64,000 bases of DNA from Dendrobates tinctorius (lineage: Eukaryota), in NCBI RefSeq assembly GCF_039654945.1, contig NW_027361725.1, positions 17,856,001-17,920,000 on the forward strand. The letters run 5' to 3'. Shown here one piece after another: positions 16,270-52,188 of the stretch (position 1 is its first letter; the number at the start of each line of letters is the position of its first letter). The notes under the pieces were generated by a model. That model searched no databases. It was not told where the DNA came from and saw only the letters and a list, made by a program, of their open reading frames with translations. A program made the position numbers and the translations under genes.

Positions 16270-18658
16270 ATAGAATCATAGAATCATAGAATCATAGAAT
16301 CATAGAATCATAGAATCGTAGAGTTGGAAGGGACCTCCTGGGCCATCTGGTCCAACCCCCTGCTCAAAGCAGGATTCGCTAAATCATCCCAGTCAGATGT
16401 CTGTCCAGCCTCTGTTTGAAGACTTCCATTGAAGGAGAACTCACCACTTCTCGTGGCAGCCTGTTCCACTCATTGATCACTCTAACTGTCAAAAAGTTTT
16501 TTCTAATATCTAATCTGTGTCTCCTCCCATTCAGTTTCATCCCATTGCTTCTAGTCTTTCCTTGTGCAAATGAGAATAAAGTTGATCCTTCTACAATGTG
16601 ACAGCCCTTTAGATATTTGTAGACAGCTATTAAGTCTCCTCTCAGTCTTCTCTTTTGCAAACTAAACATTCCCAAATCCTGCAACCTTTCCTCATAAGAC
16701 AGGGTTTGCAGACCGGTCACCATTCTGGTCGCTCTTTTCTGAACTTGCTCCAGTTTGTTGATGTCTTTTTTAAAATGTGGTGCCCAAAACTGGACACAAT
16801 ATTCCAGATGAGGTCTGACCAAAGAGGAGTAGAGGGAAATAATGACTTCACGTGATCTAGACTGTATGCTTCTGTTAATACATCCTAGAATTGCATTTGC
16901 CTTTTTTGCTGCTGCATCACACTGTTGACTCATATTCAGTCTGTGATCTATTAGTATACCCAAGTCTTTTTCACATGTGCTGTCACTTAGCCCTATTCCT
17001 CCCATTCTATATATGCTTTTTTCATTTTTATTGCCCAGATGTAGTACTTTGCATTTCTCCCTGTTAAAAACCATTCTGTTAGTTGCTGCCCACTTCTCCA
17101 GTTTATTTAAATCTTTTTGAATCCTCTCTCTCTCTTCTCTAGTATTAGCTATCCCTCCTAGCTTTGTGTCATCAGCAAATTTAATCAGTTTACCCTCAAT
17201 TCCTTCATCTAAATCATTGATAAAGATGTTGAACAATACAGGGCCCAGGACAGAGCCCTGTGGTACCCCACTTGAGACATTCTTCCAACTGGATGTGCAG
17301 CCATTTACGACCACTCTTTGGGTCCGATCACTAAGCCAGTTATGAATCCACCTAACAGTTGCCTTGTCCATTCCATACTTAGTCATTTTTTCAATAAGAA
17401 TTGTATGAGAGACTTTGTCAAATGCTTTGCTGAAGTCAAGATATACTATATCTACAGCATTTCCTTGATCCACCCAATCAGTGATACCGTCATAGAAGGA
17501 AATTAAGTTAGTCTGACATGACTTATTAGTTACAAACCCATGCTGACTCTGTTTAATCACTTCATTCTTATCCAGGTATTGACATACATGTTGTTTAATA
17601 ATTTGTTCAAAGATCTTTCCTGGTATAGAAGTCAGACTCACCGGCCTATAGTTGCCTGGGTCCACCTTCTTCCCCTTTTTGAAGATAGGAACAACATTTG
17701 CTCTTCTCCAGTCTTCTGGCACTTCTCCTGTTCTCCAAGAATTTTCAAAGATTATGGAGAGGGGTTCAAAAATTTCTTCTGCTATCTCCTTCAGTACTCT
17801 GGGGTGTAATTCATCTGGACCTGGAGACTTGAATTCATTTAGGTTAGCTAAGTGTTTCCTCACTATCTTTCTGTTTATAGATATCCTGGATTCTTCTATT
17901 CCCTTAATAGGACAGTGAATAACAGTTGATGTTACATTTCCTTTCTGAGAGAAAACAGATGCAAAATAGGAATTTAAAAGTTCAGCCTTCTCAACATCCT
18001 GTCTTACCATTTCATCATTTTCATCCTGTAAAAATCCTATAGCATCTTTTACTTTTCTTTTACTTTTGACATATCCCCAAAATCCTTTATTATTGCTTTT
18101 GACATCTCTTGCAAGCCTCAATTCATTTTCAGCTTTAGATAATCTGATTTGTGCCCTGCAGGTTCTGCAGACAGCATTATATTCTTCTTTAGATATGCCT
18201 CCCTCTTTCCATTTTATAAACATTTTTTTCTTCCTTTTTAGCATGTGCTTAAGTTCTGTGTTCATCCATCCTGGTTTCCTTAAATGCTTCCTATTCTTCC
18301 CTCTTTTCGGAATTGTTAACAACTGTGCTTTGAGAATTTCATTTTTCAAGATTTCCCATCCCTCCTGGACATTTTTGTCTTTTAGGATATCCAGCCATTG
18401 GATCCCTCCAATTCTCTTTCTGAATCCCTTAAAATCTGCCTTTCTGAAATCTAACCTTGACGTCTGAGTCTTCACAGGTCTTCCGCCTCTAGTTATCCAA
18501 AATTCTAAAATAGCATGGTCGCTACCTCCTAGGGTCCCAGCCACTTTTACCTCCTCAACCATTTCCTCCCTGTTTATAAGGATTAGATCCAAGGTAGCAG
18601 TTCCCCTTGTTTTCTCCCTTACCTTTTGGAAGATAAAGTTGTCAGCAAGAGAGGATAA
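16270..18658 (-). mobile_element. CR1 LINE, copy 2, 5' truncated, intact 3' end
   Basis: (GATTCTAT)n tail at 16270-16320; identity to copy 1 ends at 18658. Confidence 0.95.
16379..18592 (-). CDS. CR1 ORF2 reverse transcriptase; uninterrupted, but most of the endonuclease is missing
   Basis: 737-aa open frame with QGSVLGP, FADD and the CR1 C-terminus (WNRLPREVV). Confidence 0.9.
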   Translation of the reverse strand: MDLILINREEMVEEVKVAGTLGGSDHAILEFWITRGGRPVKTQTSRLDFRKADFKGFRKRIGGIQWLDILKDKNVQEGWEILKNEILKAQLLTIPKRGKNRKHLRKPGWMNTELKHMLKRKKKMFIKWKEGGISKEEYNAVCRTCRAQIRLSKAENELRLARDVKSNNKGFWGYVKSKRKVKDAIGFLQDENDEMVRQDVEKAELLNSYFASVFSQKGNVTSTVIHCPIKGIEESRISINRKIVRKHLANLNEFKSPGPDELHPRVLKEIAEEIFEPLSIIFENSWRTGEVPEDWRRANVVPIFKKGKKVDPGNYRPVSLTSIPGKIFEQIIKQHVCQYLDKNEVIKQSQHGFVTNKSCQTNLISFYDGITDWVDQGNAVDIVYLDFSKAFDKVSHTILIEKMTKYGMDKATVRWIHNWLSDRTQRVVVNGCTSSWKNVSSGVPQGSVLGPVLFNIFINDLDEGIEGKLIKFADDTKLGGIANTREERERIQKDLNKLEKWAATNRMVFNREKCKVLHLGNKNEKSIYRMGGIGLSDSTCEKDLGILIDHRLNMSQQCDAAAKKANAILGCINRSIQSRSREVIISLYSSLVRPHLEYCVQFWAPHFKKDINKLEQVQKRATRMVTGLQTLSYEERLQDLGMFSLQKRRLRGDLIAVYKYLKGCHIVEGSTLFSFAQGKTRSNGMKLNGRRHRLDIRKNFLTVRVINEWNRLPREVVSSPSMEVFKQRLDRHLTGMI

Positions 18659-24553: not shown

Positions 24554-27500
24554 TATTATGAACTCATTTTCGGCTCCACCAGTTGAGAGTTCCCCTTCCG
24601 TTCTCCCTCTGGTGGTGACAGGAGGTAGTGAGGTTGGTTTAATTGGTAGTGATCTGCCACCTGATGAGGAAGATAACGATTGGATCTCTGGAGTATGAGA
24701 CTAGATATGACAGCCGACGCCCTATCCGGGTGCTGGTGATTCAGTCTGCTTCTCAGGTCCTGGACTTCAGCTCTCTTCCAGTCTTCTCAAGTTAAGTTTG
24801 TTTTTTGCTAATGTTCACACTTGCGCTTGTTGGTCAATTCAGTTTCTTGTGTAATCAGCCTGCCCCTGCTGGGGCTATGCTGAATTTTCACTCCTATTTA
24901 TCAGTATTTGCCAATCTGTTTTTTGTCCCTTATTAGATTGGCCTCTTTTTGCTCTGTCTCAGAATATTTCAGAGTGCTGATATAGGTGTTGAAGTCTAGT
25001 GGCTTCAGGGTTAATTTTGGTATCAGAAGTGTTGGACAATATTTTTGTAGGTTCCTTTCCTGTCCTTTTTAGTAAGCCGGGCCCCATCGTTTGCTCAGCC
25101 TATTTTCCTGCCTTTGTTTGTATTTTCATCTTGCTTCACCGTCAATACTTGTGGGGGGCTGTCTTTCCTTTGGGGTCTGCTCTGGGGCAGTTAGTTTTCC
25201 TCTTTTCCTGCTTTAGGCTTATGTAGCTCTCCGGTTGTGACGAGGCGTCTAGGACCATCGTAGGAACGCTCCACGACTGCTGCTAGTTGCGCGGTTAAGA
25301 TCAGGGATCTGCATTCTGCATAGTTACCAACTTCTCTGGTTTTCTGAGACTTAGCTTGTTGTCTTTTTTTTTCCCTCCTCGGTGACCCATTCATAACATA
25401 ATCACCAGCCATACAGCAGATTCTAGGGTACTCAAAAGCAGGAAGGAATTGTTAAAGAAAAAAGAAAAAAAAAGTGTCAGAATTTTTATTTTTTTTTTAT
25501 TTTTTTATGTATTTTTTCCTCTTTTTCTCTGGGGCCGCAGGAGGATTTTTTTTTCCTAATGGAGATTAAGCAACTGTCTGATCGTGTGGAGCAGCTTGCT
25601 GCTGAAGTACAGGGAATTTCCACCTACCATATTCAGTCACATGCTGCTGAACCCAAGATTCCTACTCCTGATGTGTTTTCTGGGGATCGGTCTAAATTTC
25701 TTAATTTTAAGAATAATTGTAAATTATTTCATGCTTTGAATCCTAACTCATTGGGGAGCTCTGTGCAGCAGGTTAAAATTGTCATCTCCTTGCTGCGCGG
25801 CGATCCCCAAGATTGGGCTTTTTCTCTGACACCTGAAAATCTTATTTTGACTAATGTGGATGCATTTTTTCAGGCCTTGGGGCTGTTGTATGATGAACCT
25901 AATGCCGTTGATCAAGCTGAGAGAACCCTGTTGGCATTAAACCAGGGTCAGGATCCTGCAGAGTTGTACTGTCAAAGATTCCGAAAGTGGGCGGTCCTTA
26001 CTACATGGAATGATAGTGCATTGGCAGCTCTCTTTCGGAAACGTTTGTCAGAGACTGTAAAAGATGTTATGGTGGGATTTCCTGTTCCCTCTGGTCTGGA
26101 CGTCTCTATGTCATTAGCCATTCAAGTTGATCGGCGTTTACATGAATGTAAAACTACACGGGAGGTGCTGCCACCTTTTGAACAAATGTCTGAACCTATG
26201 CAATGTGATGGGGTTTTGTCTAGGGCGCAACGTCGGGAGTTTAGAAGGCGCAATAAGCTGTGTTTTTTCTGTGGAGGCGCCTCGCATACTATTTCTGTCT
26301 GCCCTAAACGAGAGAAACGTTTTGCACACACATTTGCTGTGGGCAGTATACAACCTAAGTTCCTTTTGGCAATTACTCTGATCTGCTCCTTGTCCACATT
26401 TTCCACTAAGGCTTTTGTGGATTCAGGAGCAGCTCTGAATCTGATGGATTTAGACTTTGCTAAACATTGTGGTTTGTCCATGACACCTCTGCAGATGCCT
26501 ATTCCTTTGAGGGGTATTGATGCCACTCCTTTGGCGGAGAATAAACCTCAGTTTTGGACCCAGGTGATAATGCGAGTTGCCCCAGACCACCAAGAAAATT
26601 GTAAATTTTTGGTGCTGCATAATTTGCATGATACTATTGTTCTGGGGTTCCCCTGGTTGCAAACTCATAACCCAGTTTTGGATTGGAAATCTGTGTCTGT
26701 GGTGAGTTGGGGTTGTCAGTGTGTTCTTAGGGACGCTCCTGTTTTCTCCACCTCTCCTCAGTCTCATGATATTCCTGATTATCTTGCTGATTTATCTGAT
26801 GTTTTTACTGAGAGTAAGTCTGCGTCTTTGCCTCCTCATAGGAGTTAGGACTGTGCAATTGAGTTGATGCCTGGGTGTAAATTTCCCAAGGGTCGGCTTT
26901 TCAACTTATCTGTCCCCGAACATGATGCTATGCGATCCTATATTAAGGAGTCATTGGAGAAGGGTCATATTAGACCATCCTCGTCACCTTTAGGCGCTGG
27001 TTTTCTTTTTGTGGCCAAGAAAGATGGTTCATTAAGACCGTGTATTGATTATCGTTCCCTTATCAAGATGACAGTTAAATATCAGTACCCGTTACCTCTG
27101 ATGTCTGATTTATTCTCCAGAGTTAAGAATGCCTGCTGGTTTACTAAGCTTGACCTCAGGTGGGCGTATAATCTTATTCGCATCAAGCACGGGGATGAAT
27201 GGAAGATGGCGTTTAATACTCCGGAGGGACATTTTGAGTACCTGGTGATGCCTTTTGGGCTCTCTAATGCCCCTTCTATCTTCCAGTGCTTTATGAATGA
27301 TATTTTCCGAGACTTTGTGGATAAGTTTTTGATCATCTATATGGATGATATTTTGATCTTCCCTAGTGATTGGGATTCCCATGTGGAACATGTCTGGACT
27401 GTGTTCCGGATTTTGAGGGAGAATTCCCTGTTTATTAAGGGATCGAAGTGCCTCTTTGGTGTACAGAGGATTTCATTTTTGGGATTTATCTTGTCTCCAT

Positions 27501-30473
27501 CGACTATTGAAATGGACCCAGCCAAGGTACAGGCCATTTATGATGGGGTTCAGCCTACTTCTTTGAAGGCTCTCCAGAAGTTTTTGGGTTTTTCTAATTT
27601 CTATCGTAAAATTTCTAGGTAATTTTCTAGTATTATCAAACCACTGACTGATCTGACCAAGAAGGGAGCTGATGTGCTGAATTGGTCTCCTGAGGCTGTC
27701 TCAGCATTTCAGGAGCTTATGCGGGGATTTACTTCAGCTCCAGTTTTACGGCAACCTGATGTCTCACTTCCATTTCAAGTGGAGGTGGACGCTTCTGAGA
27801 TTGGTGCAGGAGCTGTTTTGTCCCAAAAAGACCCTGTGACTTCTAAGATGAATCCCTGTGCCTTCTTTTCTCGAAAGTTTTCCCCATCTGAACGCAACTA
27901 TGACGTGGGGAATCGGGAATTATTGGCCATGAAATGGGCATTTGAGGAGTGGAGACATTGGTTGGAGGGAGCTAGACATCAATTTGTGATCCTCACCGAT
28001 CACAAGAATCTGATTTATCTGGAGTCGGCCAAACGCTTGAATCCTAGACAGGCTAGATGGGCCTTGTTTTTCACGCGTTTTAATTTTTTGGTCTCTTTTC
28101 TTCCGGGCACTAAGAATGTTAAGGCAGATGCCTTTTCTAGGAGTTTCTTTGCTGATTCTCTTAATGTGACCGAGCCTACTACTATCCTAGGTGAGGGGGT
28201 AGTTCTTTCTGCCATTCCGCCCGATTTGAGACGCACCCTGGAGGAATTTCAGGAGGATAAACCTGAGCGTTGCCCTACAGGAAGATTGCATGTTCCTGAC
28301 CAGTGGAGAAAGAGAGTGATGTCTGAAGTCCATTGCTCCGCATTGGCTGGTCATCCGGGTATTTTTGGTACCAGAGATTTGGTGAGTCGGTCGTTTTGGT
28401 GGCCTGCCTTATCTCGTGATGTCAGGAATTTTGTACAGTCCTGTGGGACTTGTTCTCGGTCTAAACCCTGTTCTCGTTCTAGTGGGTTGCTGATGCCCCT
28501 GCCGGTGCCCAAGAGGCCATGGACCCATATCTCAATGGATTTTATTTCTGATCTTCCTGTCTCTCAGAGAATGACTGTTATCTGGGTGATTTGTGATAGG
28601 TTTTCGAAGATGGTCCATCTTGTACCACTCCCAAAGTTTCCATCTTCCGCTGAGTTGGTGCCCTTGTTTTTACAACAGGTGTTTCGGTTACACGGGATTC
28701 CTGAGAACATTGTGTCCGATAGAGGGGTCCAGTTTGTCTCCGGATTCTGGAAAGCCTTTTGCTCCAATCTGGGAATTCAGTTATCCTTCTCCTCCGCGTT
28801 TCATCCCCAGACCAATGGGCAGACTGAAAGAACAAACCACACACTGGAGTCTTATTTAAGATGTTTAATATCTGCTGATCAAGATGATTGGGTCTCATTT
28901 TTGCCCTTGGCCGAATTTGCGCTGAACAGTAGAGCTAGTTCTGCCACTCTGATGTCACCCTTTTTCTGTAATTTTGGGTTTCATCCTCGATTCTCTTCAG
29001 GGCAAGTGGAATCTTCGTCCTGCCCAGGTGTGGATAATGCAGCAGATATGGGACCAAGTGGTGGATAAGTTGTCACTCTCTCAGGAAAAGGCCCTGCGTT
29101 TTTCCAACCGGCGTAGGACCATTGGTCCCCGGTTTAAAGTGGGTGATATGGTTTGGTTGTCGTCTAAGAATATTCCTATGAAGGTTGCATCTCCAAAATT
29201 TAAGCCAAGATTTATTGGACCTTATAATATTTTGGAGATTCTTAATCCTGTTTCTTTTCGATTGGCTCTTCCAGTTACGTTCAAAATCCATAACGTATTT
29301 CACAAGTCACTGTTGAAGAGGTTTGTTGAGCCAGTAGTTCCTGTGGCGGCACCTCCTGATCCTGTATTGGTTAAAGGCAATGTGGAATATGAGGTAGAGA
29401 AAATATTGGATTCTCGTTTGGTTGGACGGAGACTCCAGTATTTGGTCAAATGGAAGGGTTATGGCCAGGAGGATAATTCTTGGGTCTCTGCCTCTGATAT
29501 TCATGCCAATAAATTGGTTCGTGATTTTCACCGGGCCCATCCTGATCGGCCTGGTGGCATGGATGAGGGTTCGGTGACCCCTCCTCAAGGGGGGGTACTT
29601 TTATGAACTCATTTTTGGCTCCACCAGTTGAGAGTTCCCCTTCTGTTCTCTCTCTGGTGGTGACAGGAGGTAGTGAGGTTGGTTTAAGTGGTAGTGATCT
29701 GCCACCTGATGAGGAAGATAACGATTGGATCTCTGGAGTGTCAGACTGGATATAAGACAGCCGACACCCTATCCGGGTGCTGGTGATTCAGTCTGCTTTT
29801 CAGGTCCTGGCCTTCAGCTTTCTTCCAGTCTTCTCAAGTTAAGTTTGCTTTTTGCTAATGTTCACACTTGCGCTTGTTGGTCAATTCAGTTTCTTGTGTA
29901 ATCAGCCTGCCCCTGCTGGGGCTATGCTGAATTTTCACTCCTATTTATCAGTATTTGCCAATCTGCTTTTTGTCCCTTATTAGATTGGCCTCTTTTTGCT
30001 CTGTCTCAGAATATTTCAGAGTGCTGATATAGGTGTTGGAAGTCTAGTGACTTCAGGGTTAATTTTGGTATCAGAAGTGTTGGACAATATTTTTGTAGGT
30101 TTTTTTGGCAGATTGCAGACAGTGTCTTTCCTTTCCTGTCCTTTTTAGTTAGCCGGGCCACATCGTTTGCTCAGCCTATTTTCCTGCCTTTGTTTGTATT
30201 TTCATCTTGCTTTACCGTCAATACATGTGGGGGGCTGTCTTTCCTTTGGGGTCTGCTCTGGGGCAGTTAGTTTTCCTCTTTTCCTGCTTTAGGCTTATGT
30301 AGCTCTCCGGTTGTGACGAGGCGTCTAGGACCATTGTAGGAACGCTCCACTACTGCTGCTAGTTGCGCGGTTAAGATCAGGGATCTGCATTCTGCATAGT
30401 TACCAACTTCTCTGGTTTTCTGAGACTTAGCTTGTTGTCTTTTTTTCCCCTCCTTGGTGACCCATTCATAACA
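24554..30473 (+). mobile_element. Full-length Ty3/Gypsy chromovirus (Tf1/sushi-like), element 1
   Basis: LTRs 24554-25398 and 29599-30473; TSD GAGGAG; PPT AAGGGGGGG near 29587-29595; gag-PR-RT-RH-IN-chromo order. Confidence 0.95.
25559..29606 (+). pseudogene. gag-pol polyprotein of element 1, disrupted
   Basis: CFFCGGASHTISVC knuckle, FVDSGA protease, YMDD RT, VDAS RNase H, HHCC/DDE integrase, GPY motif, chromodomain YEVEKILDSR..YLVKWKGY; stops at ~26846 and ~27620, frameshift near 29035. Confidence 0.93.
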
Positions 30474-32252: not shown

Positions 32253-32991
32253 CAGTTGTGTAAAAAAGTGTTTTTCCCTTTCCTAATTTTCTATACTTTT
32301 GCATGCTTGTCACACTTAAATTTTACAGATCACAAACAAATTTAAATATTAGACAAAGAGAACACAAGTAAACACCAAATGCAGTTTTTAAATGCAGGTC
32401 TTTATTACTAAGGGAAAAATAAATCCAAACCTACAGGGCCCTGTGTGAAAAAGTGTTGGCAGCGGATTATTCAGGATACTTTGCAAGTGTGTGACAACAG
32501 AGCTTCTTTATTCAGGAACAAACAGGAACAATATATGATAAACTTAATAGATCAAGAATAAATCATTTGTGTGTCTCTATCTGTGCAGTATCTACAGCAG
32601 ACTGCTTCTCTCATAGTCAGACACAGGAAAAACAAGAAATACAGTCACATGCTCTCCCTGTGTGAGCTTCTGGGAGTTTTTTTTTTCTAAGTTTATAAAC
32701 AGCATACAAATCCATTAACTAAACACTCATAGACAGGAATGGAGTTGTTGCACCAAACATATTCCAACAAAAAGTGATTGCCCCCTAAACCTAATAACTG
32801 GTTGAGTCACCCTTAGCAGCAACAACAGCAATCAAATATTTGAGAAAACTGACAATGAGTCTTTTAGAAATCTCTGGAGGTATTTTGGCCCACTCATCTT
32901 TGCAGAATTGTTGTAATTCAGCCATATTGGAGGGTTTCCGACCATGAACCGCCTTTTTAAGGTTAAGCCACAGCATCTCATTGGAATTAAG
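32253..32991 (-). mobile_element. Tc1 element 3' part (long TIR + transposase C-terminus)
   Basis: TA-CAGTTGTG..AAAAGTG terminus; EMLWLNLKKAVHGRKPSNMAELQQFCKDEWAKIPP...AAKGDSTSY. Confidence 0.85.
32454..32769. mobile_element. 316-bp solo LTR (Copia-like termini)
   Basis: TGTTGG...CCAACA with 5-bp TSD AAAAG (32449-32453 / 32770-32774). Confidence 0.8.
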
Positions 32992-33259
32992 AGCCTTTCG
33001 TGCCCTTAATAGTAACACGGAGGACAGTAAAGACTAAGAACTGATAAGGAAAAGAAGGATCCTCCAAACACAAAAAAGTGTCTAAAAAGTATTGATTTTT
33101 AATAAACAATTATTTAAAAAAAAGGACATAAATAAAACAAAAGAGATGGTAACACATACTAACAGAAAATGAAAAATACACTATGCAGAGGTAATAGTAA
33201 GAATCACTTCATTAATAAGGGTTTATACATATTGAGCCTGTAAACTAGTAAGTACCTAA
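32868..33259. repeat. 392-bp direct repeat, copy A
   Basis: Colinear with 34843-35234 at offset 1975; about 7 substitutions by eye. Confidence 0.97.
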
Positions 33260-34413
33260 CAAAGCACAATACAGGCGAAGCAGGGCACTGGCTTTGACTA
33301 CGTGCTCCTCTTAGAGTCCACAATAGACAGGTCCTCCAAGGTCAATGTCTCCACACTTTGATATCTGTGGTTTTTTCTCAGTTGGAAGGATGCTCATTAA
33401 CTCAGAGAGGAGCTCTGCCTCATTTGCCACAGAACCGAGCTGCTGTTTTCTCGTCTTCTCAGTTGACCATTGCGAATAAAGGTGCCAAACCAGGTCCTAA
33501 CTTTTGCATTGGTCCCAAGGAGTAGCCCGCTTACAAAGCACACCATGTTGCTCACACCACCATCACCAGCCTCATTTTTGGTATGGTCCAAGGTCAAAGC
33601 TACACCAAGCCCTGGAAGGTGACATTCCTCTACCACCATGCCTCAAACTTTCAGGGCTTGTGATGGATTCATCTTGCACAGTTGTCGGAGAGCTTCAGTT
33701 CTGCGCCTCCCTCCAGTACTTTCTTCATCTTGACGTTCTCCATTTTTTATCAAGCTCCTACAAACTTCATTAAAGCTGTCTGGAACATTGGCGACCAGCA
33801 AACAAAGGAACCAAGCTCCATTGCGAACATGAAGGAGAGCTTCAGCCATGTCCGTGATAGGCAGCAGTGTGTGCAGCTCAGCTTGTAAAATGCAGAGTAC
33901 ATCCACAGCTTCCTCTATGTGCACAGGACTTTCAAAGAGCTCTGATGACTTCAGGAAATATTCACCATTAGAATCGGCCACCTTATTGATTATTGCCAGT
34001 AGCTCACTGAGCACTAGTTGTAATCGACGAGGAGAATCGCTGTGCTCAAACTCCAAAGTCAAGCCATGCTGAAGTTGGGACACAAGGATACTTTCTCCCG
34101 TACCTCCCCCAAGCTTATGTCTAAGTTGTTGTTCTTTGTTGGCATCCTGCTCTAATGCATGGAAATCTACAGAGAGCAAGGCCACAATGGAATTAACAGC
34201 CTCTACTCCTGACAGTAGCCGGAGAAGCAACTTTTTGTCCTGAGCCCAACTTTGGCTCTGGTCAGCAGGGGCACACAAGGCCATGCGGACCAGACATGGT
34301 AGTAGCAGTCTCAGCTCGGGATCACTCAAGGCAGCCAACCGTACTACATCCACTTTCTGCATTGCTTCAAATGCATAAGGGCTGACATACTGAAGACATG
34401 AACTCTCACCCAT
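33260..34413 (-). pseudogene. INTS2: Processed (intronless) pseudogene of Integrator complex subunit 2, N-terminal ~385 codons
   Basis: AFEAMQKVDVVRLAALSDPELRLLLPCLVRMALCAPADQSQSWAQDKK...VVEECHLPGLGVALTLDH...EEHVVKASALLRLYCAL; stops at 33643 and 33311, frameshift near 33415; no introns, no poly(A). Confidence 0.93.
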
Positions 34414-34842
34414 TGTACTTACTCATGATCAATTCAGCCACACAAACGTGTTCTCTAAGCAGGAGTGCTGAAGTCGCTGCCGGCACCTTTGGTAGGGGCT
34501 TATCTGGAACGCCTTTCCTTATAAGAGTATGTGCACACAACGTCCTTTTCTGGTAGGTGCAGAACGGAACACTCCTGATACGTCCAGGGGCCCTGGGAGG
34601 CCGGTGTGTGTGTGTCCGGTGCTCCCCCCCGGAGACGGGACACGCACTCAGTGCGCTTGCACTACAGCCCAGGGCAGTGCAGCGCTCGGGTGCTGGATAG
34701 AATGAGCGCAGCTACGGGACACATCACGTGTTCTATCAGTATGGTCACTATTGGATCACTGTGGTAATACAGTGCCCGGAACATAGGACCTAGGGTGAAT
34801 GTGCGCCAAGGGACCGGAAGTAGGTAGCAGTCGCAGCGGTGC
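34414..34842 (-). promoter_or_regulatory. Putative INTS2 5' leader / promoter-proximal CpG-rich segment with an ETS motif
   Basis: Contiguous with the INTS2 ATG; GC/CpG-rich; ACCGGAAGT at 34813-34821, 21 bp from the insert boundary. Confidence 0.5.
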
Positions 34843-35234
34843 AAATCTCTGAAGGTATTTTGGCCCACTCATCTTTGCAGAATTGTTGGAATTCAGCCAT
34901 ATTGGAGGGTTTCCGACCATGAACCGCCTTTTTAAGGTTAAGCCACAGCATCTCATTGGAATTAAGAGCCTTTCGTGCCCTTAATAGTAACTCGGAGGAC
35001 AGTAAAGACGAAGAACTGATAAGGAAAAGAAGGATCCTCCAAACACAAAATAGTGTCTAAAAAGTATTGATTTTTAATAAACAATTATTTAAAAAAAAGG
35101 ACATAAATAAAACAAAAGAGATGGTAACACATACTAACAGAAAATGAAAAATACACTATGCCGAGGTAATAGTAAGAATCACTTCATTAATAAGGGTTTA
35201 TGCATATTGAGCCTGTAAACTAGTAAGTACCTAA
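34843..35234. repeat. 392-bp direct repeat, copy B
   Basis: Matches 32868-33259. Confidence 0.97.
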
Positions 35235-35605
35235 TATTGATGATGGAAATATATGCTGCAGTTCTAATCACACTAGCATAATGAAGATACAAGACAGTAA
35301 GGGTTAATATGCAATAAACAAAGTGCTGAGTATTTAATACATGTATATGATGCTGGAAGATGCTGGAGACTGTCCCAGGTGAGTGGTGCAAACCAGACAG
35401 ATTGGATATTAAAAATAAGGCTATAATAGCATGATTCCAAACTATCTGGTAGCAGACAGACCAGGGGCAGTGAAACAAATATGGTTTACTAAGAAGATAT
35501 CTAAGCAACACTCACTATAGGCATACAGACAGGCATATTTACCAGAGCTACAACCCGCAACAGTGGACCACCTTAACACATGTTTTGGCAGTTCTTCCTC
35601 AGATG
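34967..35605 (-). mobile_element. Penelope-like terminal-repeat relic
   Basis: Minus strand begins CTGAGGAAG-AACTGCC-AAAA-CATGTGT (decayed hammerhead-like, 35574-35602), followed by an AT-rich tail that abuts the Tc1 sequence. Confidence 0.45.
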
Positions 35606-36500
35606 CAGCTCTCCCAAAGTTCTCCTTGGAGAGGAGAATGTGTCAGTACCCTTTCGTTAGGTTCAGGATGGTTATGTATTTGGCTGACCTTAGCCTCTCA
35701 ATGAGTTCATCAACACAGGGCATCGGCTATGTGTCAAATTTGGACACTTCATTGAGTTTTAATAGTCATTACAGAAACAACATTTTCCATCAGGCTTTGG
35801 CACAAGGACAGTTGGGTTGGATAAGCCTCTCTTTGACTCCTGGAATGATTCCCAGGCTCAACATCCTGCTCACCTCCTTTGAAATCACCTCGCGGTGTGC
35901 TTTGGGGATTCCATACGACACATGTGGTTACATCAGGATTCCATGCTCCACAACCTGTACCTGTCCTAGCCACTCGGGAAACAGGTCCCTCAGTTGAATG
36001 AATGATGAGATCCCGTTGGGGCCTGTGGAACTTCCCTAATAGCGAACTAGACGTATGGGAGTAGGCAATCTCAACCATCCTTTTCCATGACCTTCTTAAG
36101 CATGGACTTCAAGATCTTATTGAACCTCTCCAGCAGACTATGTGTGTGCAGATGATACACCTGAGTTGTGTAATCTGGAGAAACTTATATAACACCCTCA
36201 TTACCTTGGACATGAATGGCATGGTTGGTCCATCAGGATCTCCTTTGGCAGGTCTGTTTGAGAGAAAATATGAACTACCTCTTGGGCTATACTCCTGGCC
36301 GAGGAGTTTCTCAGTGGTATCGCACAATGTATATATAGAAGGGAGCACTATTGTCAAACCGCAATATCTAATGGAGTACAATACCTAGCCTAAGAGGGGA
36401 TCCAAAAACCCTGAAAAGAAGAGTAAACCATTACAGGGGTCGTTCCTCCCCATATCAGCACACATACCAGACCAGATGGAAATAAATATGGAGACCATAT

Positions 36501-38803
36501 GTGGTCCTATTGAGTGTGACGCCTAGATGCCATCTTCAGGTGATCAATCTTTCAGAATATGTGTTATCTTCCACAGAGTTATCCATATTACAAAGGGGCT
36601 TGACTTTTGTTCCTACTCACAAATTGGACAAATTTGCCTTAATTAAAGATCTATATCTTTTTTGTAGGAAGCTTACGTTTCAGGTCATTTACAAAAAAAC
36701 GGACCTGATGCGCTCCTTTCCCTCTGATGAGCGTCAAGCCTTTCAAGATTTACTGGATTTATTGGAAGAAAATGAGCCTGTCACCCATAGGAGGAAATTT
36801 CCATATAGGAACAAATCCTCCAGGACTCCCTCTTTCTCCTTGGTACCCGCTATCAAGATCTTCTTTGAACTAGTCAAACGTGATATTACCTTGATGTCTC
36901 CTCAGGTAGATACTGTGCCTAATTTAACTCCATTAGAGAGACGTGCTCTGGCTGATCTGAAGAACAACAAAGAAATAATAATTAAGGAGGCCGACAAAGG
37001 GAGAAATGTCATCTTGTGGCCCATACATCTATACACAGAAGAAGCATATAGGCCACTTAATAATTCTCGTTTTATCAGAGACTCCCTTCTGACCCTACAC
37101 AGGTTTTTCTCTCTAAGTACCAGGCATTGCTCTGCAAAGCCAATGGCTATGGCATCATCACCAATAGTGAAAAGAGATACCTTTGGGCTGACAATCCTGT
37201 GATGGCAACTTTTTATATGCTGCCAAAGGTACACTGGGACGACAAAAAAACCCTGGTTGGCCGATTATCTCTAGTATAGCGAGTCTTTGTGAAAAGGCTG
37301 GAGATAATTTAGATTTTTTTCTTACAGCCTATTGTACTTTCTTTGTCTTCATTTGTCAGAGACTCTGCTCATTTCATTGAAATCTGTTGCCGTATTTCTC
37401 TGCCTACTGAATTTTTTCTAGTGACTTGTGACGTAGAGTCACTTTACTCTAACATCAGCCATGAGAATGCCTTTTTACTAGAACTCCTGAAATTTGTCCT
37501 TTATCATAATTTTTTTCTTTTTGATAGAACATTTTTTCTGCAAACATCTGGAGTGGCGATGGGGGCGAAATGCGCGCCAGCCTATGCTAACATCTTTTTA
37601 GGCTGGTGGGAGGAGAATGTTGTATACCCCCTGGAGACCTTTCAATCTCAGGTCTGTCATTGGCATTGTTACATCGATGACCTATTCTTTGTTTGGAGGG
37701 GTACCGAGGGGGACTGTATACAGTTCTTAAACAGTCTAAATATCAATTCCTACAACATCTTCTTGACCCACTGTATTTCCAACAGTTCCGTCACATTTTT
37801 GGATTTGTCAATAGAGGTCGAGGGTCAGCATTTGGTTACTAATCTCTTTCGCAAACCAACGGCAACCAACTCCTTATTGGAATTTAACAGCTTCCACCCA
37901 ATGCTCACCAAGGTGGGTGTACCTGTTGGTCAATTTTTGCGGGTGAGATGTAATTGTACTCGTGACTGTGACTTCTTGTTACAGGCTCGCCACCTCACTG
38001 ACAGATTCCGGCAAAGAGGCTACTCTAGAAGGATTATATCTAAGGCCTTTCAACGTGCAAGGGGACAAAATCTGGTGTCACTCTTATCCCCTTAGAGACG
38101 TGATCAGGACACACAGACTAGATTCATCACAGACTTTAATAGCAGCTGGCATCAGGTAAGATCTTTCTTATCTCGACATTGGCCCATTTTGAGGACTGAT
38201 GCTCAGACTGCGGCGGTCATTTCGGATAGACCACTGCTCACTTTAAGGAGGGCCCCCAATTTGCCTGATTTGCTCACTCAGAGTCACTTCTCTAGGCCAA
38301 CTACCCGACTTAACAGAGGCATTATACTCAAGGGGTCGTTCCCCTGTGGGGATTGTAATGTCTGCCCTTTTATGCCACCTACAAGGGATCTGTTTATAGA
38401 TCCTGTTAACTCCAAGAGACTTCCGTTGAGGACGTATGTGAACTGTAAAATGAGGGATGTGATTTATGCCATCGCTTGCCCTTGCAATAAAGTATATGTT
38501 GGGCAAACATCACAAGAATTAAGAAAAAGGGCCCAAAAGCATATATCTACCATACAATTGGCAGCAACTGATCGAGAAAAGGGTAAACTGCTCACTCCCA
38601 TAGCTGCCCACTTCTTGGAGACCCATGGGGGTTCACCCAGGAATTTGAAGATTGTTGGGCTACAAAAAGTTTTCCTGGGTGCCAGGGGGGGGAGTTCACA
38701 CAAGCTATTACTACACATAGAATCCCGGTGGATTTATGCGCTAAATTCGGTGGCGCCAATAGGGCTTAATGAAGAATTACTCTTCACCGGCTTCTTGGGA
38801 TGA
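36501..38803 (+). pseudogene. Penelope RT and GIY-YIG endonuclease, disrupted
   Basis: VINLS..LQRGLTFVP, KEADKG, DVESLYSNI, GVAMGAKCAPAYAN, YIDD, CGDCNVC, VIYAIACPCNKVYVGQT..R...H, P.GLN. Confidence 0.92.
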
Positions 38804-40384
38804 ATTCTTTCTCCCCTTTCTTGTGTGAGTACATCTCCCCTTTATTCTGTATCCATTTCTTGTTCACAGGTGCCGTGATGCTTGGTTTGGAGATGCTGCT
38901 ATATTGCATAAATGGGCCTGGCTATTATTCCGGCCCACGGAGGGGAATATTTTTTGTCTCTCACGGATATTGGATGGTTCAATCTAATCACTGGAGTCCC
39001 TGTTATGGATTATGTGGCTTTTTGGGCAATTCTTCATTATAGACTATGTGGCCTTTTTGGCATCAGTTCTGGGATATGGATTGGATCTGGACGGGGCTTC
39101 CTTGGAGGAATTATAATATCTTCTGGACACTCAACATATTATGGATTGGCGTCTTCTTTCCTTATGGAGTCCAGGGTAATGACACTTGGACATGAATTGC
39201 ATCTGGACTGGACCTTACAGATGAATTGTAGCATTTTTCGGATATCTAGTTCATGATACATCGATATGCTCAATTGATGAACATTACTTATATGCATACT
39301 TGCTGTGCGCATATTGGGTTCACATTAGTTGTTTGTTAATACATGTGTCATTTTTGAGGGTGGGATTATACTGGGCTCTTTATACCAACATAGTGGTCTT
39401 GGGTTATTACTCTGCATAAGGCATTTATATGTCATGTAACCTCATATTGTTTAATTATTTGCCTTGTACTCTGGCCTTTTCTGGACCTTTGTCTAAAATC
39501 ACTTGCTACCCCTTTTTTTTCTTGATTCTTTATGGACCCATTTTTTATTCCCCTATATTATTCATTAAATTATATTTGGTTGTGTATATATGTCTTTGCT
39601 TCATATATATGTGTTTATTCGTATAAATATAAACACTGTTCACACACATTTTTTATTCATTTTTTTAGTGCTGGAACCAGTGCGCGCGCGCGCTCTTTTG
39701 CAGGTGACACCTACTGATGATACATTCTAATACATGCTGCTTTTCTGCTTTATAGGGCCATTGTGGTTCTTATTTCCATCTTTTTAATAATAAGGCTTGC
39801 TATGCATGGTATTATGCATGCATCTGTTAATATGGTGGTAATTACCACCTTTTGTGATCTTTTGATGCGCACACCCGGTTGTCACTATGACCGCGCGTTT
39901 GTTTTCATGGTGTCAGTATGGACTCCTTGGGTTCTCAGATGCGCATGCGCGGTTATCACCATGACCGCGCACCACTTAGTGAGCACGCACGCCTGTTACC
40001 TTGGTGGCAGCAATAACATCCTGTGCTTCCTAAAGTGCATTCGCGGATACCTTTTGGACTGCAAATACCTCTTTCGGTATCATGACTGGATAGTCGCTGC
40101 ATTTATTCCTATCAGGTGTGCTTTTCGGAGTTTCTCTCCCCTTTTTTCATGACTACACATTGTTTAGTGCGCATGCTCGCTGATTACCTTTGTCACAGCA
40201 ATAACATCTTGTGCTACCCAATGCACACGAGCGGATACCATCTGGACCATGATTATCACTTCCGGCACCTGGGTTGGGAAGTTGCTGCATTCATCCGTAC
40301 CAGGTGTGTTTCTGGGCATTCCCTTCCTTTTGTGACTATTGGTAAGGATATTTAAACCAATTTTATTTTGCTTTAGATCAACTT

Positions 40385-48860: not shown

Positions 48861-51800
48861 TCAGGCCTTGTTCATTTTCAGAAAAGTAAGCCGGTCAACG
48901 TTATCGGAGGATAGTCGCGTGCGACGGTCTGTTAGTACACCACCTGCGGCACTAAAGACGCGTTCCGATAATACACTGGCAGTAGGGCAAGCCAGCACCT
49001 CCAATGCATACTGGCTAAGCTCTGGCCATGTATCCAGCTTAGAGACCCAAAACTTGAAGGGGGAAGAGCCGTCTGGGTGTACACTGACAGGGCAAGACAT
49101 GTAGTCTGTCACCATCTGACGGAAACGTTGCCTCCTGCTGACTGGAGCCGTCTGTGGCGGTCTAGACATTTATGGCGGGCACACAAAACTTTGGCACATT
49201 TGGGCCATACTGGTCATGCCTTGTGCTGAGGCGCTGCCTCTGCTTCCTCTTTGTGTAGAGCTTCCTCCACTGCCTCGACGCACAGAGCTGCTTTGTAAAG
49301 CACTAGCAGCACTGCTCTCGGGTGGAATGGAGAACATGATGGACTGCACCAGTGTTTCTTGGTACTCCCGCATTTTACGCTCCATGTTCAACCTTGTTAT
49401 GAGGATTTGTAAGTTGTCATGGTAGTGAGGATCTAGGAGGGTGTACACCCAATAATCAGCCGTGTTGAGAATGTGGGCGATGCGGCGGTCGTTTCTCAAG
49501 CACTGCAGCATGAAATCAACCATGTGCTACAGACTCCCAACTGCCAAAGAAACGCTGTCCCCTGCTTGAGGCGTCATCTCTGCCTGCTCTGCATCAACCC
49601 ACCCTCGCTGTACATACTGACTAGAGCATTGTGTATCTCCTTCCTCTGGAGAGATGTCTTCCTCCTCCATTGACTCCTCCTCATCCTCCTCACAAAGTAT
49701 CCCATGCCTAGGCCTTTGTAAGGAACCACGTAGTGCAGACTGTCCAGAAGCAGATGGCATTTGTGACACCTCATCCTCCAACTCTTCCAAAACCTCCTCC
49801 CTTAGTGCTTGCAGTGTTTTTGTGAAGCAGGCAGATAAGGGGGACAGTCATGCTGACTAGTGCATCATCTGCACTCGCCATCCGAGTGGAATCATCGAAG
49901 GCACGCAAAACGAGGCAGATGTCCTTCATAGAGGCCCACTCAGTGGTGCTGAAGTGTGACCGGCGTACAATGCGACTTGTTTGCACCTGATGCAGCTGGT
50001 ACTCCATTACTGCTGCCTGCTGCTCACACAACCGCTCCAACATATGTAACATTGAATTCCACCTGGTGGGTAGGTCACATATGATGCGATGTTCCAGAAG
50101 GCGTAATCGGCGCTGCAGAGCTGCAATGCGCGATCTTGCCATGCTGGAACGCCGCAAGTGAGCGCGCTCTATGCGGACCTTGTGCAGCAGTCCATCAAGA
50201 TCCGGATAGTCCCTCAGGAAGCTCTGCACGACCAAGTTGAGCACATGTGCGTGACATGGGATGTGATTGAGGTTGCCTAGACCCAGAGCTGCCACCAGAT
50301 TTCGGCCATTGTCACACACTACCAAGCCTGGCTGGAGATTCGCTGGCACAAACCACTCGCTCTCCTTCTTGATGGCATTCCAGAGCTCCTGCGCTATGTG
50401 GCTTCGATTCCCCAAAGAAATTAATTTCAGTAGGGCCTGTTGACGTTTGGCCACGGCTGTGCTCATATCGGTCGTAACAGGCTCCTGCAGTGTTGATTCT
50501 GAGGAACTGGAGTTTGCGAAGGAGTCAATGTGCACAGACTGGATTCCTGCAATCCTTGGAGTTGGCAGAACACGTACAATGCCACTCTCAAGATCTGTAC
50601 CTGGCTCCACAACATTGACCCAATGCGCAGTGAGGGAAAGGTATCGTCCCTGTCCATGGTTACTGGTCCACGCATCGGTGGTCAGGTGGACCTTGCTACT
50701 GTCGGCGTTTAGTAGCACATGTTTAATTTTTCCCTCCACATGCTTATGCAGGGCAGGGATGGCTTGCCTGCTGAAATAAAAGTGGCTGGGCACGGTGTAT
50801 TGTGGGACTGCCAATGCCATGAAGTTCCGGAAGGTGTCTGTCTCCACCAGCCTGAATGAGAGCATTTCAAGGGCTAGTAGTTTGGCAATGCCAGCATTCA
50901 GAGCCTGTGTTCGGGGATGGTTTGCCGAATATGGCCGCCTTTTCTCCCATTCCTGTGCTACCGATGGCTGTAGAGTGGCCTCGGAGTGTGAGGATGAACG
51001 GGAACGTGGTGCTGTGGGTGGAATGTCACTGGGTCTCTGGACAACAGTGCCAGAGGTTCTTCCATGGTGATCCTGTGAGGAAGCCGAACCAGCTGTGTGT
51101 GAGCTGGAGGAAGAGGCTACAACACGGGCTGAAGAGGTGGTAGGTGGTGCTGTAGGTTGGCCTACGTCTTCAGTGTGTCTTTGTAACTCCACCACGTGCT
51201 TGGTCCGCACATGTTTCCACATATTTGTGGTATTGAGGTTGCTGACACTTTTCCCTCTTTTGACATTCTGGTGACACAGCTTGCATTTGACAAAGCAAAT
51301 GTCACCTGCAACTGTGTCAAAAAAGGACCATGCACTGCAAGTCTTGGGAGCGCCCGTTTTGGCTTTTGGAAGAGGAATGCTCCTAACGGGTGCCGAAGTG
51401 GAGGCTACAGGCAACCAAGTCTGCCCCCTCCCTCTCCCTCCTGTTTTGGCTGTTCGGGGAATCTTTTCCTCAGAGCTGCTCCCACCACCTTCCTGTTCCT
51501 CACGCCATGATGGGTCAAGGACCTCATCATCTACACTCCCCTCTTCAAACACCTGCTTCTCCTGGGTAGTCTCGCCAGCACCGTACGCACCAGAAAGTGG
51601 CACCTGAGTCTCATCATCTGATGTGTACTGAGGTGTGCTGACCATAGGCACTGGCCCACCCGCCTCTTCAGATTCAGAGGGACAAAGCAGTTGCTCATCA
51701 CTGCATACTCCCTCTTCTTCACATTCTTGAATGCTGCTTGGCTGGCCCCCTCTTTCCAAGCCAACAGATTCAGAGAACAGAAGTAGAGACTGAGATGGCT

Positions 51801-52188
51801 CCTGTCCAGGGCTCTCTGACTGCCTGGGCAATTTGGCAGGTGGTGAAGAGACAGATGGTTGCTCTTCAGTGCTCTGGCCCTGAGAGGATGTGGAAGTCAT
51901 TGAAGTCGATGTGTTAGCTGCCATCCATCCGACAACGGCTTCAATTTGTTTGTCCCGCAGCAGTAGGGTACGTCGAGGTCTTACAAAGCTGCGCATAAAG
52001 GACTGTTGCCTGGTAAAACTGGGGGATGCTGACTCACTGGTGCCCGCAGCAGGCACAGTATCCCCACGTCCTCTCCCTGCTGAATCCCCATGTCCTCTCC
52101 CTGCTGCAACTCCATGCCCACGACCACGTGCCTTACTCCCTGCCTTCTTCATCTTGGTAGACTGATAAAGATAGGCAGAAAAGTACAA
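48861..52188 (-). pseudogene. hAT transposase (BED zinc finger, DDE, dimerisation domain), frameshifted in the 3' third
   Basis: WSFF..CKLC..TTNMWKHVRTKH, LTTDAWTS, CDNGRN, CHAHVLNL, TRWNS, LDPHY, ASVLSERVFSAAG..RTRLS. Confidence 0.92.

Follow-up and report, generated by a model that had tools for sequence, protein, structure and literature searches.

How did a piece of a host gene that keeps its leader, yet breaks off inside its reading frame, come to lie between two long direct repeats in the genome of a poison frog? The locus belongs to a stretch of 64,000 nucleotides of Dendrobates tinctorius DNA, analysed as a whole and called the window here, and its central part, 33260-34842, is a dead copy of the first third of the spliced INTS2 mRNA. 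The copy, its lesions and the repeats that bracket it are composed as follows.

32700-32985, minus strand: C-terminal fragment of a Tc1/mariner transposase, the last 118 bp of which (32868-32985) lie within R1
32868-33259, no strand assigned: R1, left copy of the target duplication, with a Tc1 part and an AT-rich part (alignment to R2)
33260-34413, minus strand: INTS2 coding part of the retrocopy (Pfam PF14750, RNA contigs)
33311-33313, minus strand: stop TAA at codon 368, AAA (Lys) in the parent
33414-33415, minus strand: 1-nt deletion causing a frameshift at codon 334; the mRNAs of both species have an extra G
33643-33645, minus strand: stop TGA at codon 257, CGA (Arg) in the parent, a CpG transition
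34414-34842, minus strand: INTS2 5'-UTR in the retrocopy, 429 nt, with 34414-34809 backed by RNA contigs
34843-35234, no strand assigned: R2, right copy of the target duplication (DNA contigs identical to R2 alleles, ending at 35234)

The INTS2 reading frame opens with an ATG at 34413 and comprises codons 1-385, its last residues (...YCAL) being encoded at 33260, 21 nt short of the exon end, and the insert matches the Pfam INTS2 family with E=6e-101 and 4e-21. Same-species RNA-type contigs are colinear with the insert over 33260-34809 and depart from it exactly at 33260, where they continue ...YCAL|MGIAGLKP, one of them entering an intron; the continuation into ...YCAL-MG that the preliminary description had assigned to INTS2 can thus be read directly. 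Likewise, the upstream leader of about 430 bp reported there proves to be the true INTS2 5'-UTR in its RNA-backed portion, which is covered up to 34763 by a contig of run X9 and up to 34809 by a contig of run X7 that then passes into Illumina adapter. The 33 nt beyond this coverage (34810-34842) are GC-rich and include a ACTTCCGG motif.

The intron loss proposed earlier is supported by the colinearity with spliced mRNA, by the size of the parent (an 84 kb gene for 1174 aa) and by the presence of GT-AG introns in another vertebrate (locus L002) at points matching 34121|34120 and 33982|33981; additionally, one DNA contig stops at 33980, where exons 2 and 3 are joined. The parental alleles are those of Dendrobates tinctorius INTS2, and the insert differs from the spliced same-species mRNA by 16 substitutions and 1 indel over 1504 nt. 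Same-species exon-1 fragments in the protein collection match at 94-96% at best, none of them being identical. Eight lesions are private to the copy (7 substitutions and 1 deletion), and among these substitutions six are non-synonymous and four are CpG transitions. The insert is therefore a retrocopy by its RNA origin, its identified parent and its private changes, one that was never functional and is now decayed. At its 3' junction there is no A-run, codon 385 directly abutting R1 at 33259|33260. Collectively, these observations support a cDNA with a retained 5' end, an internal 3' cut in the coding sequence and no poly(A), surrounded by a 392-bp target duplication, and they uphold the earlier statement that the copy differs in three respects from a canonical L1-type processed pseudogene (5' end kept, poly(A) missing, long duplication).

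The repeats themselves are 392 bp each, and the 1583-bp insert fills the space between them exactly, adjoining the last base of R1 on one side and the first base of R2 on the other. The outer edges of both repeats are colinear with the flanking DNA. Their alignment gives 7 substitutions and no indels, in agreement with the roughly seven differences noted beforehand. Each repeat spans an older Tc1/AT-rich boundary, as had been described, and the junction can be placed at 32985/32986. On its Tc1 side, the open reading frame at 32791-33018 (minus strand) matches the C-terminus of Sleeping Beauty SB100X (E=1.9e-12), and the fragment is of very high copy, with a depth in the thousands in the DNA run; its reading frame runs uninterrupted across the left edge of R1 and is colinear further left. 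The AT-rich part of the repeats has 30% GC. R1 and R2 are target DNA made up of the tail of a Tc1 transposase and low-copy AT-rich sequence, and not the termini of an element. A reading of R1 and R2 as parts of an LTR retrotransposon was rejected because the repeat starts inside the colinear Tc1 reading frame.

Three further features lie to the right of R2, two of them neighbours outside the event.

35235-35600, no strand assigned: AT-rich low-copy continuation, contiguous with the repeat unit before the insertion, unclassified
35600-36400, minus strand: decayed Gypsy-like pol fragment (three-frame translation)
36501-38803, plus strand: decayed Penelope-like element with reverse transcriptase (RT) and GIY-YIG domains (Pfam)

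The continuation at 35235-35600 carries on from R2 at a depth about 6 times the single-copy level, and has no Pfam match and no second copy in the window; the open reading frames of 35.2-36.4 kb likewise lack Pfam matches. Within 35600-36400 the integrase lies ahead of the RT, a Gmr1-like order, the family name being our own presumptive reading. The Penelope-like element is recognizable by RVT_1 (E=6e-6) and GIY-YIG (E=1.5e-4). Young LINE copies that encode APE and RT and share 97% mutual identity are present in the same window.

The age of the copy can be approached from two sides. Private divergence amounts to 0.6-0.7% in the INTS2 copy, and R1 and R2 diverge by 1.8% pairwise; from 7 private substitutions in 1165 nt, 4.7 repeat differences would be expected against the 7 observed (P=0.2). 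As the private divergence of the insert fits that of the repeats, insert and duplication represent one event. At codon 358, in turn, the sister species and other frogs have GAG, the retrocopy has GAC and the present-day gene has TAC, a series which places the copy after the split from the sister species. The retrocopy thereby preserves an intermediate allele of its parent (Glu to Asp to Tyr, with Asp in the copy), and its single age and lineage point to one germline event on the branch leading to Dendrobates tinctorius.

By what mechanism the cDNA entered the target must be read from the junctions. Both are blunt, and neither displays microhomology. Priming by microhomology at the 3' junction, previously suggested from the similarity of ...LG in the repeat to ...MG in the mRNA, is not supported by the sequence at this point, since the first base is mismatched and the likeness comprises 3 of 6 nt (P=0.17). 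Two outcomes, a very long staggered duplication and a retro-insertion bridging two breaks, are viable, and we consider it probable that reverse transcription was primed at a break or nick, began inside the mRNA and ended with the joining of its far end 392 bp upstream. Given a sense mRNA as template, sequence logic dictates that only the plus-strand end at 33259 could have acted as primer. Accordingly worded as a model, the process would start with a free 3'-OH on the plus strand at 33259, where ...CCTAA met TATTG... before the insertion, provided by a nick or break in transposon-derived DNA. An RT would then extend this end on the spliced INTS2 mRNA, starting after codon 385 and stopping at the mRNA 5' end or at most 33 nt short of it. 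The far cDNA end would be joined to a second break 392 bp upstream, which could be either a distant second-strand nick or a sister-chromatid break; fill-in would copy the 392 bp between the breaks twice, and both joins would be made by blunt end-joining. We infer both this order of steps and the enzyme, most likely an RT of LINE origin acting on a foreign template and not on its own RNA, for which the young APE- and RT-encoding LINE copies of the window provide circumstantial evidence.

Several observations weigh against this break- or nick-primed scheme. No endonuclease-type target motif is evident, the primer strand ending in CCTAA, and the primer would have lacked terminal base pairing. CR1/L2-type LINE enzymes normally require their own 3' tail, and L1 requires poly(A), which leaves an internal start in INTS2 unexplained. 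The RNA support for the leader stops at 34809, 33 nt before the insert end, so that arrival at the cap is putative. Moreover, endonuclease-independent insertions and class 2 templated insertions normally come without target duplication (PMC5110952).

An alternative that dispenses with target priming is break repair, in which a break was patched either with a ready-made cDNA fragment or by a repair polymerase that used the RNA as template, and the duplication arose when the broken end re-invaded the sister chromatid upstream of the break through synthesis-dependent or microhomology-mediated template switching. The blunt junctions and the lack of poly(A) and of an endonuclease motif would all be compatible with such a patch, and RNA-derived break patches have been documented in human cells and populations (PMC5110952). 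However, the class 2 patches described there are usually short and have no target duplications, the re-invasion point lacks microhomology, and a fragment reaching to within 33 nt or less of the mRNA 5' end fits run-off reverse transcription better than a random fragment. We therefore regard break repair of this kind as unlikely.

Less probable still is an origin from Penelope-like machinery (RT plus GIY-YIG nuclease), which would have acted by internal priming or template switching and left the repeats as a by-product of its habit of forming partial tandem copies. In its favor, a decayed Penelope-like element lies 1.3 kb from the insert, and Penelope enzymes can mobilize host genes in trans in a rotifer (PMC3846280). 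Yet this element is on the strand opposite to INTS2, and the repeats are duplicated target, i.e., Tc1 and unrelated DNA, and not pseudo-LTRs. The "Penelope-like tail" of the preliminary description corresponds to the AT-rich stretch, which is similar to nothing else in the window: the pre-insertion sequence resembles no other part of it, including the Penelope element and its tail, and no repeat is common to 32.8-36.5 kb and 36501-38803. The decayed hammerhead-like motif reported in the repeats could not be recovered either. Rfam at the gathering threshold over the whole window gave no hammerhead in the repeats, Rfam at E<=10 gave no match in 31-40 kb (9 kb) or in 32900-33270 (371 bp), and a scan for the core CUGANGA...GAAA found it absent from R1 and R2, a scan that a copy decayed past recognition could escape. 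Furthermore, in documented Penelope captures the host genes retain introns and lie between pseudo-LTRs, with duplications of 8-10 bp (PMC3846280), three features that are all missing here. In sum, the INTS2 insert is a one-off event for which no tie to Penelope elements was found; of the non-L1 capture route put forward earlier, the Penelope part is not supported and the very long staggered duplication stands as viable. It is similarly doubtful that poison frogs harbor a recurrent L1-independent route, in which a resident RT, possibly of Penelope type, would start inside host mRNAs, run to the cap and generate long target duplications; if such a route existed, the genome would be dotted with 5'-end copies of genes that include promoter-proximal leaders.

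An origin in two steps, in which a 392-bp tandem duplication already existed and a cDNA later landed exactly at its junction, is highly improbable, as the insert abuts the end of R1 and the start of R2 to the base and the repeats have diverged to a degree that agrees with the insert. An assembly artefact, in which INTS2 mRNA or gene reads were joined to the repeat, deserves next to no credence: no listed short-read contig spans either junction by at least 31 nt and the best DNA run is possibly the assembly's own sample, but DNA contigs match the copy at 100% identity across its private lesions, the deletion and the two stops among them, the ends of the De Bruijn contigs from the DNA run fall at 33260, 33980, 34843 and 35234, as expected of graph branches, the R1 and R2 alleles are both present, separately, in that run, and 8 private mutations with a pseudogene spectrum are unexpected from an artefact. 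An exact look-up of independent contigs with the junction ORFs or with the 256-aa retro-ORF found none on record. The R1-INTS2-R2 locus is confirmed as a genuine insertion.

The locus thus offers a resolved natural case of a host mRNA entering a vertebrate germline outside the L1 poly(A) route. Its two junctions are known, and so are the parent allele, the age and the lineage. In a retroelement-rich frog genome, retrocopies can be 3'-truncated, tail-less and bracketed by hundreds of duplicated target bases, and pipelines that require poly(A) and short duplications will overlook copies of this sort. No biological function is evident for this lone dead copy, which would gain greater weight only if such events recur genome-wide.

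Compared with known types of insertion, the INTS2 copy shares with the canonical L1-type processed pseudogene the copying of a spliced host mRNA into the genome and its subsequent neutral decay. Unlike such pseudogenes, it has no poly(A) tail and no duplication of about 7-20 bp at a TTTT/AA-like site, and it is truncated at the 3' and not at the 5' end. Penelope-mediated mobilization in Adineta vaga (PMC3846280) also leaves host coding sequence between direct repeats in a Penelope-bearing genome; there, the repeats are pseudo-LTRs, introns are kept and the duplication is 8 bp, whereas in the frog the repeats are target DNA without a hammerhead in a terminal repeat, introns are lost and the duplication is 392 bp.

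Closer parallels are found among insertions that arise at breaks. Class 2 templated sequence insertions are RNA-derived patches (PMC5110952), and endonuclease-independent L1 insertions, as cited in the PCAWG L1 study (PMC7058536), are 3'-truncated. Both resemble the frog insert in being RNA-derived and 3'-truncated, in lacking poly(A) and an endonuclease motif and in their end-joining-type junctions, but the absence of a target duplication is part of their definition and small deletions are frequent among them, whereas the frog insert has its 392-bp duplication and blunt joins without filler. Conversely, long duplications are on record for LINEs: of 25 insertions of the fish L2-clade element ZfL2-2 in DT40 cells, 1 came with a target duplication of 1228 bp (PMC2666801), and L1 cDNA bridges tandem duplications via a second break, with lengths up to megabases (PMC7058536). 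In these cases, as in the frog, a reverse-transcribed insert lies exactly between direct target copies of more than 20 bp, far above the usual 7-20 bp. The frog insert differs from them in that it derives from a host mRNA and not from LINE RNA, has neither poly(A) nor a LINE tail, starts inside a coding sequence, and represents a germline event fixed in the assembly of an amphibian. The INTS2 event is thus best regarded as an uncommon form of the LINE-type or endonuclease-independent insertions already known.

The INTS2 (Integrator subunit 2) copy is bounded by two direct repeats, R1 and R2, which align over 392 bp with 7 substitutions and 0 indels and flank the insert exactly, as the preliminary description had stated:

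32868-33259: R1, left copy of the 392-bp direct repeat, from its alignment to R2
33260-34842, minus strand: INTS2 insert, 1583 bp between R1 and R2
34843-35234: R2, right copy of the 392-bp direct repeat, from its alignment to R1

On the minus strand, the insert consists of a 429-nt leader, an ATG at 34413 and 385 INTS2 codons, and its two longest open pieces match Pfam PF14750 (E=6e-101 and 4e-21). When contigs (not raw reads) of four public sequencing runs were placed on 32700-35400, two transcriptome-type runs of D. tinctorius itself gave contigs colinear with 33260-34763 and 33417-34809, the latter of which runs out into Illumina adapter, so that the leader is genuine INTS2 5'UTR. Given this RNA contig coverage up to 34809, the copy falls short of the mRNA 5' end by 33 nt at most. 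In a sister species, one run covers 33260-34424 of the insert. All three runs diverge from the window at exactly 33260, continuing ...YCAL-MGIAGLKP, and one of them enters intron sequence (GTAAAT) after another 21 nt; the 3' cut of the copy therefore lies inside an exon, at neither a splice site nor a poly(A) site. No A-run is found at the insert 3' end, where codon 385 (...YCAL) adjoins R1 directly. At 34621, the window has G as opposed to C in all DNA contigs of run X1 at the site and in both same-species RNA runs, a mismatch due either to polymorphism or to an assembly base error.

The proposed absence of introns is likewise borne out. The D. tinctorius mRNA shows nine protein differences from the copy, at exactly the positions where the NCBI INTS2 of this species differs from it, and the INTS2 gene spans 84 kb in the D. 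tinctorius assembly and 80 kb in that of Phyllobates terribilis. Within the reach of the tools, intron loss is established, because a Logan contig of another vertebrate carries canonical GT-AG introns at points matching 34121/34120, 33982/33981 and ~33880, exon-sized INTS2 protein fragments from many genomes end at common residues (...QQLR and ...NKV), and a D. tinctorius DNA contig ends at 33980, which corresponds to the exon 2/3 join plus two letters (GT) common to the intron and exon 3. Separately, P0014, a 194-aa ORF of another organism with 75% identity to the INTS2 N-terminus, has no intron at the exon 2/3 join that it crosses and appears to be a retrocopy of INTS2 formed independently, again with the 5' end retained.

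Support for the junctions comes from contig ends at 33260, 34843 and 35234, which coincide exactly with predicted graph branches, and from the presence of both R1 and R2 allele sets among the DNA contigs. None of the listed contigs spans a junction with at least 31 nt, and the best DNA run possibly derives from the sample used for the assembly. Both the R1/insert and insert/R2 joins are blunt, and neither terminal microhomology nor filler was found at either. The microhomology priming suggested for the 3' join (YCAL-LG against YCAL-MG) amounts to a match at 3/6 nt that does not include the first base (P=0.17) and is not upheld.

Counting as private those sites where the copy departs from a state shared by the two species' mRNAs, eight changes were found (7 substitutions and a 1-nt deletion at codon 334). 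The substitutions are two stops (Arg257, CGA to TGA, and Lys368), R132Q, A170V, D285G, R333Q and one silent change, i.e., 6/7 alter the protein, and 4/7 are CpG transitions; most private changes in the functional INTS2 of the sister species, by contrast, are silent. The copy is a dead pseudogene, and none of its private alleles was found in RNA contigs of the same runs, giving no sign of expression. Since 7 private substitutions in 1165 nt (0.6%) predict 4.7 R1/R2 differences against the 7 observed (P=0.2), the insert and the duplication are of the same age. Codon 358 is GAG (Glu) in the sister species, Phyllobates, Ranitomeya, Anomaloglossus and Hyla. The copy has GAC (Asp) at this codon and present-day D. 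tinctorius INTS2 has TAC (Tyr), so the copy arose on the D. tinctorius line, later than the split from the sister species, and holds an intermediate allele of its parent. At codon 357, the copy has Ile versus Thr in the present-day gene (codons 357-358 occupy 33341-33346), and one run shows a third variant at 33346.

As had also been noted, each repeat contains a junction between a Tc1 fragment and AT-rich sequence. The left 118 bp of both R1 and R2 encode a Tc1-type transposase C-terminal end (match to the Sleeping Beauty SB100X C-terminus, E=1.9e-12), and AT-rich sequence (30% GC) makes up the other 274 bp. The Tc1 reading frame of R1 runs unbroken into the left flank, and to the right of R2 the AT-rich sequence extends into 35235-35600, with an unchanged, several-fold depth in the DNA run. 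Thus, the repeat unit is a pre-existing target across an old Tc1/AT-rich junction, copied twice, and not a mobile-element terminus. The AT-rich sequence belongs to a low-copy repeat family, as 34975-35400 (the AT-rich part of R2 and its right flank) is covered by the DNA run at ~4-8x the single-copy depth, against single-copy depth over the corresponding part of R1.

The preliminary description proposed, as one option, that Penelope machinery made the insertion, and the window does hold a decayed genuine Penelope element, listed here with its neighbor and the remaining elements:

35600-36400, minus strand: decayed Gypsy-like pol fragment, integrase core end directly before RT start
36501-38803, strand opposite INTS2: decayed Penelope element (RVT_1 + GIY-YIG)
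25559-29606, plus strand: Gypsy-type element (gag, protease, RT, integrase, chromodomain-like tail)
54623-58809, minus strand: Gypsy-type element with the same components
49771-52188, minus strand: 805-aa open frame with a BED zinc finger in a GC-rich stretch, which looks like a hAT-type transposase
4467-7033, plus strand: LINE copy (APE endonuclease + RT, long open frames)
16379-18592, minus strand: LINE copy (APE endonuclease + RT, long open frames)

The Penelope route seems improbable, and nothing at the locus supports it. The element lies on the opposite strand, with an unclassified stretch and the pol fragment between it and R2, and has no direct or inverted repeat in common with the INTS2 region. 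For the decayed hammerhead-like motif claimed for the repeats, Rfam gave no match at E<=10, either across 31-40 kb or in a separate search of 371 bp, and the CUGANGA...GAAA core is absent from both repeats. The pre-insertion sequence, as reconstructed, has no match elsewhere in the window. Documented Penelope captures show pseudo-LTR frames, retained introns and 8-10-bp duplications (PMC3846280), none of which occurs at INTS2. Behind the Penelope ORFs, 39860-40320 carries internal direct repeats of ~74 and ~180 nt and may be the tail or pseudo-LTR region of that element. The domain order of the pol fragment is Gmr1-like (copia-type); the two Gypsy-type elements are related, oppositely oriented and very similar in their proteins.

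The lack of poly(A), the 3' cut inside an exon and the 392-bp duplication support the non-L1-type retro-insertion originally inferred, and the target offers no T-run able to pair with poly(A). Only a single geometry permits in-place copying of the sense mRNA, with the plus-strand 3' end at 33259 as primer. Extended rightwards on INTS2 mRNA, this end would yield first-strand cDNA, whose other end (34842) would be joined to a minus-strand end at the 32868 position, 392 bp upstream; fill-in would then duplicate the DNA between the two ends, giving the repeats. Our interpretation is that INTS2 mRNA was reverse-transcribed in a one-off event primed at a break or nick, and that the far end of the cDNA was captured 392 bp away, the breaks being either spontaneous or made by an element nuclease. 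The two LINE copies, which belong to one family and are 97% identical in protein, represent a young, possibly active RT source and are a plausible candidate for the enzyme.

Published precedents exist for each unusual feature of the locus. Of 25 insertions made by a fish L2-clade LINE, one came with a target duplication of 1228 bp (PMC2666801). Tandem duplications can result when L1 cDNA bridges to a second break, on the sister chromatid, and L1 insertions made independently of the endonuclease also show 3' truncation (PMC7058536). RNA-derived patches at breaks in human germlines lack poly(A), as does the INTS2 copy, but have no duplications (PMC5110952), whereas that at INTS2 measures 392 bp. 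The INTS2 locus combines known outcomes in an unusual way and most likely reflects a single accident.
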